From Octopus sinensis (lineage: Eukaryota): 64,000 nt of DNA. Within the stretch, counting starts at the first letter, position 1, and each line of letters begins with the position of its first letter. The stretch covers positions 75,082,001 through 75,146,000 of the forward strand of contig NC_043001.1 in NCBI RefSeq assembly GCF_006345805.1, in the 5' to 3' direction. A program made the position numbers and the translations under genes. This document shows positions 25,201 to 28,200 of the stretch, piece after piece. The notes under the pieces were generated by a model. The model was given only the letters and a program-made list of their open reading frames with translations, was not told where the DNA came from and did not search any database.

Positions 25201-28200
25201 GCTTGTGTTTATGTATTTATGCGAATAAGAATAAGAACAAGCTAAAATTACTACTTGCTTTTATACTCCCCTCCGACTTTCAGTTCATGCAATTGAAAAA
25301 ACCGCATTATTTATAGGATGACTATATATATATATATATATATATATATATAATATATATATATATATATATATACACACACGCATAAGTGTATGTTTGC
25401 TTTCTCCCCTCGCTATATATCATATATATATATATATATATATACATAGCATCATCTTTTCAGAGATAGACCATCTTTTGCACGGTAAAGGTTCACATTA
25501 ATTTCGAAATTTTGGCCTCTGTCACACAATCTGATGGGGGCAAGAAAGCAGAAACGTCGAAGTCACCCTCAACATTTTCATTGTAAAACTTAAATAAATA
25601 TATACATTAATAAAAAATATTGAGTACGCTTTCAATTTAATGTCAAGCTGTTTTCATGCATAACTTAACCAAAAAGAAAACACGTAGTGGCTCTCGTTTA
25701 ACCGCATCAGTTAGTATTTAACGTGTATGTCTACTGGAAATTTTGTGTAGCGGAAACAAATGTAGGTCGTCGTAACCATAAAATATGCTGTATGACAGTG
25801 TAAAATAAAAGTGAATAACTCCTGAAGATGTACCAGGCTACGTATTCTCTTTCGTTATAATTACTACTACAAACATACACACACACACACACACACACAC
25901 ACACATATATATATATATAGTGAGAATTTACAACAAAAAAGACAAAAGACGAAGATGTGTGTGTAAACAACAAGCGGATGTATTAGTTTATCGCTCGGGA
26001 AGTGAGAAAGTCGTTTACGTTTCGAGCCAACGCTCTTCGACAGAAAGGAGCACAAAAATAAACAGGGAGAGACAATAAAAAAGGTTTAGTGGCGAGCGAT
26101 CTATCATGGCGAATATATATATGTAAATATATATATATATATATATATATATATGTATGTATGTATGTATGTATGTATGTATGTATGTAGGATCGCACTG
26201 CGTAGCACCTACAGCAAGTGTCTTTTAATATAGCCTCGCGCCGACCAAAGCACTGTGAGTGGATTCGGTAGACAAAATGAAAGAAACCAGTCGTATATAT
26301 ATATGTGTGTGTTTGTGTGTGCTTGTTTGTGTGTGTGTGTTTGTATCTGCGTTTGTTCGCCCAACCATCATTTGACAACCGGCGTTGGTGTGTTTACGTC
26401 TCCGTAACTTAGCGGTTCGGCAAAGAGACTGATAAAATAAGTACTAGGCTTACAAAGAATAAGTCATGAGGTCGATTTCTTCGACTAGAAAAAAATATCT
26501 TGAGGTGATGCACCAGCATGCCCGCTGTCAAATGATTGAAAGAAGTAAAAGAATAAGACTGTGTGTGCGTGTGTGTGTGTGTGGTGTGTGTGTGTGTGTG
26601 TGTGTGTGTGTGCGTGCGTGTGTGTGAATGTGTGTGTATGTGTAATTCATAAGGTTACTTACAAGAATCCTAATGAGCTGCACGTGACCTGCGCGTTCTG
26701 ATCAGTCCACTGGTCGGCACATATTCCACCCCATATTTTGTTGTGTAAGATCTCTACTCTACCACGACTGCGAGTGTGGCTAACCAATCGGATATCTGGA
26801 AATGACAATAGAAAGAAACCAGAATCATATATACATAAATACAATACACACACACATGCACACACATATGTATATATATATATATATATATATATATTAT
26901 ATATATATATATATATATAAAATAGAGAAAAACCACTATTATGTAATTCAGACAATGATAGACATAAACCAAATCAAAATCATAAAGAAAAAATAAAAAT
27001 ATATTATAAAACATATAACCAGATCACAAAAAATACTAAAAATGAATAAACAATATATAATAAGTAAAAAGACTACGTGCGTTTCATGGCTATAATTTCA
27101 AATCGAATTACAATTAAATTGAAATTTAATCGAAAAACAATTCAATTTAAAAGTATAGTCACTCTTCAGGTCAACAATAATAACAATAATAGTTAAATAA
27201 ATAATCAAACAGACTTAAACAATATTTCTTAAAGAAATAAAATCATGATTGTTCTTATAGAAGAAACTCCGTTAACTAGATTTTAAACTTAAAAAGTAGG
27301 ACCAGCTGCCTATAATACATTTATCATGTTAAAAACCTAAGGTAAAAAAATAGAGTAAATAGATAGAAAAATGTATTTATCTGTGAAGGTGTAATTTAGC
27401 TTTGAGAATAACATTAACGAACTACAGAATATCTTTTCACTAGCTATACTCTAATATTTTACGTTGCAAACTATTTTACAAAACAATCACTTAATACTTT
27501 TAGATTTTAGTTCACATATAATAATTATATGAATTAAACATGGCTACCAGCAATCGTATAATCCAACATTGAGAGCTACTTTTTGGTGGAGATTATTCTT
27601 ATTAACATTTAAATTCTTAAAAGGTATTTTCTATTATTTATAATAATAAATCAGGAGAAGTCAGAAGTGAGTGTATGATGGGAATAATTTTTTTTATTAA
27701 ATTTATGCTTCTCTCTCCCTCTTTTCTTCTTCCCACCTTTTTTCTAATCATGTGAAAGCATTACCGACGGGCTAAGTAACGCAATGACAAGCAGAATTAT
27801 TATAAGATAATAATAAAGATGATGATTGGATGATGAAAATGGTGATAAGGATGATGATGATGATGATTATTATGATGATAGATATTTCTTTATCCCACAT
27901 ATTAACACAATTAACACAGTCAATTATTTGAGCATTCTGTTCTATGTTAACTATAAGTGATGAGCAAATGTATTGGAAAGTACGAGCTTTCTTCGTAATC
28001 CTTCGACGCGATCGATACTATTGTAACTTCTTTGACAAACTCTATTCAATATTTAGAATAGGGGTTTAGCCCTTAATGAATATGACTTAGCAATAAATAG
28101 AATACTGATCAAAGTTGCAACAGAAACTTTCCTACATGCAAATTTTATATCAACATATCTAAATGGCAAACACCTTTTCACAGTTCCTTTCAATCAGGTG

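Follow-up and report, generated by a model that had tools for sequence, protein, structure and literature searches.

Canonical hammerhead ribozymes are carried by Penelope-like elements (PLEs) of the 'Hydra' clade, which have a C-terminal endonuclease (Craig et al., 2021, PMC8557442), and PLE insertion is reportedly biased towards microsatellites (PMC8557442). Most genomic PLE hammerheads are solo motifs derived from truncated elements; in metazoans the single motifs gave no detectable cleavage in vitro and dimers showed low activity (Cervera and de la Pena, 2014, PMC4209133). PLE hammerheads and their derivatives number thousands per animal genome, many of them intronic, and one extra copy is in itself unsurprising. 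Here we describe a hammerhead motif in a 64,000-nucleotide (nt) stretch of Octopus sinensis DNA (RefSeq assembly GCF_006345805.1, contig NC_043001.1, positions 75,082,001 to 75,146,000), called the window below. The motif runs from 27172 to 27071 on the minus strand, inside an intron of a gene with multiple SRCR domains. PLEs are numerous in this genome, and the motif is probably a solo relic of a PLE-type hammerhead, inserted in sense orientation in the SRCR intron and too weakly built to cut the host RNA.

By direct reading and a descriptor scan, the minus strand from 27172 to 27071 is gac-CUGAAGA-[77-nt hairpin]-GAAA-c-gcac-g-U-A-guc. The invariant hammerhead core is all in place (C3 U4 G5 A6 N7 G8 A9, where N7 is A7; G12 A13 A14; the A15.1-U16.1 pair; and A at H17). 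The topology reads as type I with helix I open, and the three helices would comprise 3 bp (helix I), 77 nt (helix II) and 2 bp (helix III). The parts are as follows:

27170-27172, minus strand: 5' strand of helix I (GAC); only 3 bp are possible, with 27071-27073, and neither reading nor a forced fold gives an extension.
27163-27169, minus strand: core box C3 to A9 (CUGAAGA), from direct reading and descriptor scans.
27086-27162, minus strand: helix II, a 77-nt imperfect AU-rich hairpin closed by G10.1.U11.1, U-A and G-C, followed by an A/C mismatch.
27082-27085, minus strand: core box G12 A13 A14 A15.1 (GAAA), from direct reading and the descriptor scan.
27075-27081, minus strand: remainder of helix III (C15.2, loop GCAC, G16.2 and U16.1), which with A15.1 gives 2 bp and a 4-nt non-palindromic loop.
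27074, minus strand: A17, the cleavage-site nucleotide; the scissile bond is predicted at 27074/27073 by standard hammerhead numbering.
27071-27073, minus strand: 3' strand of helix I (GUC), from direct reading and the descriptor scan.

Direct reading reproduces the position, strand, core nucleotides and cut site that an earlier note on this DNA had given. That note called the hammerhead complete, which is right for the core and overstated for the remainder, given the 3-bp helix I, the G.U at 10.1-11.1 and the 2-bp helix III. The helix II insert folds as one long imperfect hairpin (-21.4 kcal/mol for the 77 nt), and the 126-nt region containing it reaches -23.2 kcal/mol versus a local-shuffle mean of -15.8 (z = -2.6).

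The motif had also been described as a PLE-like type I hammerhead with a 2-bp stem III, and its architecture indeed matches that of the hammerheads flanking cephalopod PLE open reading frames (ORFs). The window itself holds one of these at 62042-62127 (+), a well-formed type I hammerhead whose helix I has 6 bp and whose helix II has 55 nt, with GAAACAUGUGUC, and which is much better built than the candidate. It sits 250 nt upstream of a PLE ORF at 62378-64000 (+), which runs off the window end, contains in-frame stops at 62939 and 62948, and shows the motifs RIRW, DKTGN, FDISNFY, YRDD and FLDITL. This ORF has 113 homologues; its relatives are proteins of about 700 amino acids on contigs of less than 3 kb, the best named ones coming from Octopus sinensis, O. 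bimaculoides and Argonauta hians. Pfam gave no reverse transcriptase match for the ORF or its relatives, so its identity as a PLE rests on homologues, sequence motifs and the literature. The PLE follows a (TA)n tract at 61850-61910, and by its sequence the element at 62042/62378 fits the 'Hydra' clade of C-terminal-endonuclease PLEs. In another part of the window, 15693-15876 (+) is a short relic of the C-terminal region of a PLE protein (tblastn E = 7e-7 to protein P0111).

At an O. sinensis locus, L006, the hammerhead at 7165-7250 is auuuuc-CUGAAGA-[55 nt, -21 kcal/mol]-GAAAC-AUAU-GU-A-gaaaau, with a PLE ATG about 270 nt downstream of it, and at an Argonauta locus (L002) three identical copies flank a PLE ORF (CUGACGA-GUCAC...[62 nt]...GAUGAU-GAAAC-AAUU-GU-U). 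The copy at 21187-21276 (+) of the window, augcag-CUGAAGA-[59 nt]-GAAAC-GAUC-GU-A-cugcau, is solo; its helix I has 6 bp and its helix III is palindromic (ACGAUCGU). The copy is antisense to the SRCR gene, is followed after about 35 nt by a long (TA)n, and escapes Rfam even in a 161-nt search. Common to the cephalopod PLE hammerheads are CUGANGA, a helix II of 55-62 nt (77 nt with the candidate), GAAAC-N4-GU-H and an open helix I. When the window copy at 62042 is compared with the L006 copy, compensatory double changes are found in 9 of the 21 predicted pairs, and eight of these pairs lie in helix II, whose length is thus no accident: the structure has been maintained. More compact forms occur in head-to-tail PLE arrays from European Nucleotide Archive metagenome assemblies (L004, 1506-1549 and 3934-3977; L005, 2112-2156 and 4584-4628), with one hammerhead in each spacer of about 320 nt. 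The window also contains a hammerhead-like sequence at 56286-56359 (+), whose helix I has 7 bp and whose helix II is a hairpin of 40 nt, and which has a poor helix III (GAAACCGUCGAUC).

The PLE-adjacent hammerheads (62042-62127 of the window, the L006 copy and the three Argonauta copies) were used to build a class descriptor, consisting of CUGANGA, an insert of 8-120 nt and GAAAC-N4-GU-H, with no helix II requirement. Its only three matches in the window are the candidate and the hammerheads at 21187-21276 and 62042-62127; the total for about 94 kb of cephalopod DNA is seven, five of them distinct, all with inserts of 55-77 nt. Shuffled sequence (1500 dinucleotide-preserving shuffles) yields an expectation of 0.082 matches per window, or 0.0033 when a helix I of at least 3 bp is included, and a reversed, uncomplemented control of 110 kb yielded one match, which lacked helix I.

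These counts bear on whether the motif is simply an AU-rich intronic hairpin that happens to be flanked by CUGAAGA and GAAAC...GUA, with no evolutionary tie to ribozymes. A loose descriptor, tuned post hoc so as just to admit the candidate, expects 0.043 matches per shuffled 64-kb window, equivalent to thousands in a Gb-sized genome. In keeping with a chance origin, helix I, helix III and the uninterrupted 3-bp closing stack of helix II are all at the descriptor minimum, the motif has neither an Rfam match nor a second copy, and AU-rich sequence folds readily, as the local-shuffle mean of -15.8 against the observed -23.2 kcal/mol illustrates. The class-descriptor expectation of 0.0033 per window, however, is reached before helix II is credited at all. 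In the real window sequence, 77-nt segments that close with 3 bp form closed hairpins at or below -21.4 kcal/mol in 0.6% (microsatellites excluded) to 3.3% (all) of cases, and an in-register closed hairpin of that stability contributes a further factor of about 4e-4 to 2e-3. The combined chance expectation is about 1e-6 to 7e-6 per window, less than one per genome of a few Gb, and real hammerhead motifs, at several per 64 kb here, far outnumber chance ones. The Rfam negative carries no weight in this question, as Rfam misses five of six clearly genuine PLE hammerheads (L002, L004, L005, L006 and window 21187). An early view of the motif as a chance match, based on the Rfam negative and the 0.043 of the loose descriptor, gave way once the class descriptor, the reversed controls and the hairpin null from real sequence had been taken into account. 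The candidate is not a chance match, and we consider the coincidental explanation improbable.

Several results nevertheless speak against a PLE-type relic. The five Rfam models Hammerhead_1, Hammerhead_3, Hammerhead_II, HH9 and HH10 give no match to the candidate at the gathering score, nor at E <= 10 in searches of 2.7 kb and 161 nt. Our own long covariance model, R2, ranks the candidate fourth in the window (18.9 bits, E of about 0.08), aligning its 5' half only and placing the 3' part in the wrong register. A tblastn search of the window with 113 PLE proteins found no PLE coding relic beside the candidate, the only matches being 62327-63928 and 15693-15876. No second copy of the motif or its flanks was found by window self-BLAST, in loci L001 to L003 (about 22 kb, 19 kb of it cephalopod) or in a pattern scan of JGI metagenomes, and window self-BLAST detected no similarity between the candidate flanks and the pseudo-long terminal repeat (pseudo-LTR) at 61911-62377. 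The class descriptor was worded after the candidate had been seen, yet it fits the independent PLE-adjacent examples exactly. Finally, two published PLE hallmarks are missing, since loop III is non-palindromic and 10.1-11.1 is not G-C.

The two hallmarks can be followed through the comparison set. Across positions 15.2-16.2 with loop III, the C15.2-G16.2 pair of the candidate is fine and ACGCACGU is not self-complementary, standing one change from ACGCGCGU; loop III is GCAC, a single change from the palindromic GCGC typical of such motifs. Among the comparators, ACAUAUGU, ACGAUCGU and ACAAUUGU are palindromic, as is ACAUGUGU if G.U is allowed. At 10.1-11.1, where G-C is the published hallmark, the candidate has G10.1.U11.1 and the extra nucleotide is absent. 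The same G10.1.U11.1 is found in the Argonauta PLE hammerhead, and the metagenomic PLE arrays L004 and L005 have a U.U opposition there, as described for the axolotl HHR_Amex2 motif. In this PLE clade the 10.1-11.1 rule is thus loose, and U at 11.1 is common.

The Rfam searches correspond to the check with Infernal and hammerhead covariance models that the earlier note had suggested. They left the candidate unmatched with models that are of low sensitivity for this class. Even at E <= 5-10 the Rfam 15 hammerhead models miss clearly genuine PLE hammerheads, from tandem arrays as well as ORF-flanking copies, and Hammerhead_1 scores 62042-62127 at only 25.7 bits against a cutoff of 34. Because the same models miss genuine PLE hammerheads, their silence is uninformative for the candidate. 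A trimmed model of our own, R1, recovers the short-helix-II hammerheads of L004 and L005, which were outside its training set; it cannot span the long helix II and mis-registers even its own training loci. Outside the training loci, the best match to R2 is 30142-30235 (+) (20.3 bits, E of about 0.04), aaucac-CUGACGA-[~65 nt]-GGAAC-AGUU-GUA-gugaau, which looks like a hammerhead of the same class minus one A of the GAAA box. Since the Rfam models largely miss the variant with a long helix II, PLE-type hammerheads are probably strongly under-annotated, in cephalopod genomes too. That cephalopod PLE hammerheads with a long covarying helix II largely escape Rfam is a side result perhaps more useful than the candidate itself.

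The lack of an adjoining PLE ORF would also suit a candidate belonging to some other hammerhead-bearing repeat that is not directly a PLE, such as a SINE-like or retrozyme-like non-autonomous element, and the window does contain repeats of this kind. A dispersed repeat of about 730 bp is present in four copies, 37585-38297 (+), 54771-55495 (+), 59128-59852 (-) and 59795-60285 (-). Each copy has conserved CUGAYGA...GGAAACAUGGGUGUU boxes, and all keep CUGAYGA...GGAAACAUGGGUGUUUCGUU, with only the free N7 varying within CUGANGA; from these boxes the repeat may be a hammerhead-bearing non-autonomous element with a helix II region of 92-94 nt. A second repeat, the minimal hammerhead at 28564-28598, has a homologue in O. 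bimaculoides. The candidate, however, shows neither similarity to these window repeats nor a tandem arrangement, the candidate region having no tandem repeat in the window except short microsatellites. Retrozyme identity was ruled out by this lack of tandem copies (window self-BLAST and tandem-repeat scan). Animal retrozymes have moreover been argued to descend from PLE pseudo-LTRs (bioRxiv 10.64898/2026.07.22.740005), so this alternative, which we find doubtful, overlaps with the interpretation as a PLE-type relic. Judged by its sequence, the candidate is most likely PLE-type, an identity supported by architecture and not by linkage, and a PLE origin is the probable reading.

The setting of the motif in the host gene is given by the following features:

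26796-28271, minus strand: host intron (intron 8 in the numbering of the earlier note), with donor GT at 28271/28270 and acceptor AG at 26797/26796; the junction is in frame (...ITLSK|DIRLV...).
28272-28422, minus strand: upstream exon; its cysteine pattern suggests the C-terminal portion of the preceding SRCR domain, and Pfam gives no match.
26665-26795, minus strand: downstream exon start, the N-terminal part of an SRCR domain (Pfam SRCR, E = 4.3e-11).
27173-27191, no strand: short tandem repeat (AACAATAAT)2, which abuts the 5' strand of helix I and resembles other AAT-type microsatellites.
26866-26919, no strand: (AT)27 microsatellite; read along the minus strand, it comes about 150 nt after the motif.

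The SRCR-like exons (31911, 26796, 14281 and 1175) share the minus strand, so the motif sits in sense orientation within an intron of a multi-SRCR gene; Pfam confirms the exons at 26796, 14281 and 1175. The predicted cut falls 278 nt upstream of the downstream exon (acceptor AG 26797/26796, exon start 26795), and the splice-site reading bears out the sense-strand intronic position, 278 nt before the acceptor exon, that had been proposed. An intronic position is commonplace for such elements, since about 43% of retrozyme copies in Xenopus overlap introns (bioRxiv 10.64898/2026.07.22.740005). The span of the SRCR gene also includes broken transposase-like ORFs at 28993-29830 (+) and 33658-34352 (+); the ORF at 29449-29622 is Pfam Transposase_1 (mariner-type DDE, E = 5e-7), and the ORFs around 33658-34352 have no Pfam match.

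Microsatellites flank the motif on both sides, and the other PLE-type copies likewise end close to (TA)n. As a PLE-type relic, the solo fragment would be a 5'-truncated PLE, a pseudo-LTR piece or a non-autonomous derivative, inserted in sense orientation between the two microsatellites of the multi-SRCR gene intron. Its 5' boundary would lie just upstream of the CUGAAGA box, at the adjoining microsatellite (AACAATAAT)2, and truncation of the element at this microsatellite is probably why one helix I strand was lost. Helix I stays at 3 bp, as the upstream (AACAATAAT)2 has no complementarity to the U-rich 3' flank. Within an intact element the ribozyme presumably processes the transcript of that element; the present copy would cleave very slowly or not at all and would be neutral for the SRCR gene.

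The remaining question is whether the motif could cut the pre-mRNA. ViennaRNA predicts that adopting the hammerhead fold costs 2.5-3.5 kcal/mol relative to the minimum-free-energy fold, corresponding to an equilibrium occupancy of roughly 0.3-2%; helix I pairs with a probability of 0.07-0.14 and helix III with one of 0.01-0.03. The PLE-adjacent control was predicted to be no better than the candidate once flanks were included, and the low occupancy therefore indicates a weak monomer activity of the whole class that is not specific to this copy. Thermodynamics was accordingly rejected as a discriminator between the candidate and genuine copies, the control being equally low with flanks. With the helix II loop about 35 bp away from the core and no loop or bulge in the 3-bp helix I, we judge a loop 1-loop 2 contact impossible on geometry; tertiary contact is what makes natural hammerheads fast (PMC6155905).

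A partner motif in a neighbouring intron had been put forward as a possible contributor to the cut. The sequence concerned, 28564-28598 (-), reads guuu-CUGACGA-a-GAGC-ucc-GCUC-GAAA-CG-U-U-aaau and is on the sense strand in the neighbouring SRCR intron; it lacks a loop III, carries an additional A behind A9 and has G10.1-C11.1, and its shuffle expectation is 0.0125. A copy 85% identical to it, with similarity extending into the flanks, occurs in O. bimaculoides (L001, 2813-2846, +), where the core is CUGUGGA and a PLE fragment lies about 1 kb downstream, which makes 28564-28598 a member of a dispersed repeat family. From these features it is a credible minimal PLE-type hammerhead-like repeat. 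In a double hammerhead, the helix I 5' strand of one copy must pair with the 3' strand of the other. Here GAC faces AAAU and GUUU faces GUC, neither of which is complementary by direct reading, and the heterodimer of the candidate with 28564-28598 was rejected; the proposed partner is a real repeat, yet its helix I strands and those of the candidate cannot form a double hammerhead. The other good hammerhead motifs of the window are on the strand opposite to the candidate, and a homodimer of the candidate would still carry the C/A-A/C mismatch from loop III.

The functional proposal of the earlier note was an active intronic ribozyme that cuts the nascent SRCR pre-mRNA between the domains that the note numbers SRCR3 and SRCR4, alone or with a partner, affecting output or giving truncated transcripts; such a ribozyme might even be domesticated, like the intronic hammerheads of amniotes. 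The intact core without disabling substitution, the sense orientation in a transcribed intron and the stable helix II are all compatible with it; invertebrate type I hammerheads with a 2-bp helix III and a tetraloop can cleave efficiently as monomers (PMC7229834), and conserved intronic hammerheads are known in amniotes (PMC6155905). The candidate may show weak cleavage in vitro. Against activity stand the 3-bp helix I without extension, the predicted hammerhead share of about 0.3-2% and the impossible loop-loop contact, together with the behaviour of single PLE hammerheads and their dimers cited at the outset (PMC4209133). On the sense strand the sole neighbour is 28564-28598, whose helix I strands are not complementary to those of the candidate and which offers just ACGU for helix III. 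A search with the peptide of the two exons flanking the intron found no homologue that would lead to an orthologous intron of a sister species. Even after co-transcriptional cutting by an inserted hammerhead, introns reportedly can still be spliced through exon tethering (Dye et al., 2006), and only fast-cleaving ribozymes reportedly lower output (Fong et al., 2009). An intronic cut, even if it occurs, need not alter mRNA output. On balance the active ribozyme is unlikely, an effect on SRCR expression is improbable, and a working hammerhead retained by the host, cleaving some of the nascent SRCR pre-mRNAs and thereby adjusting how much, or which isoforms, of the multi-SRCR receptor are made, is very improbable. 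If this last were true, the amniote RECK/CTCL intronic hammerheads would have an invertebrate counterpart, one with a long helix II working without the classical loop-loop contact; a cleaving copy would mean ribozyme-mediated regulation of an invertebrate immune-type receptor gene. For a PLE-type relic, a sense copy with an intact core inside a gene provides a natural test of whether relics ever cut host pre-mRNA.

Comparison with known systems places the motif as follows. The amniote intronic hammerheads HH9 and HH10 (RECK, CTCL, DTNB; de la Pena with Garcia-Robles, 2010, in PMC6155905) share with it the type I topology, the sense intronic position and a presumed retroelement origin; they show cross-species conservation, possess all the tertiary contacts and fit Rfam models, whereas the candidate matches no Rfam hammerhead model, HH9 and HH10 included, and is not classed as a domesticated hammerhead of their kind. 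The dimer-dependent satellite hammerheads of newt and axolotl (Forster et al., 1988; PMC7229834) have a similarly weak helix III that a double hammerhead would help, but they are identical tandem repeats in which helices I and III are cross-complementary, and the candidate has no identical neighbour. Invertebrate non-LTR retrozymes (Cervera and de la Pena, 2020, PMC7229834) consist of tandem 170-400-bp repeats, each bearing a type I hammerhead, with a helix I of 5-6 bp and often with loop 1-loop 2 contacts, unlike the candidate with its single copy, its 3-bp helix I and its lack of tandem repeats. From PLE hammerheads (PMC4209133; 'Hydra' clade, PMC8557442) the candidate differs in having no adjoining PLE ORF or pseudo-LTR homology, in carrying G.U instead of G10.1-C11.1 and in its non-palindromic loop III, and its 77-nt helix II contrasts with the 6-8-bp helix II described for minimal PLE hammerheads. 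It shares with them the type I topology, the intact core, the very short helix III, the short helix I and the dispersed solo occurrence beside microsatellites, and with the cephalopod copies also GAAAC-N4-GU-H and the long helix II. By these sequence features, the closest known system is the PLE-associated hammerhead of the canonical 'Hydra'-clade type, of which the octopus motif is most likely one more, fairly ordinary, example.

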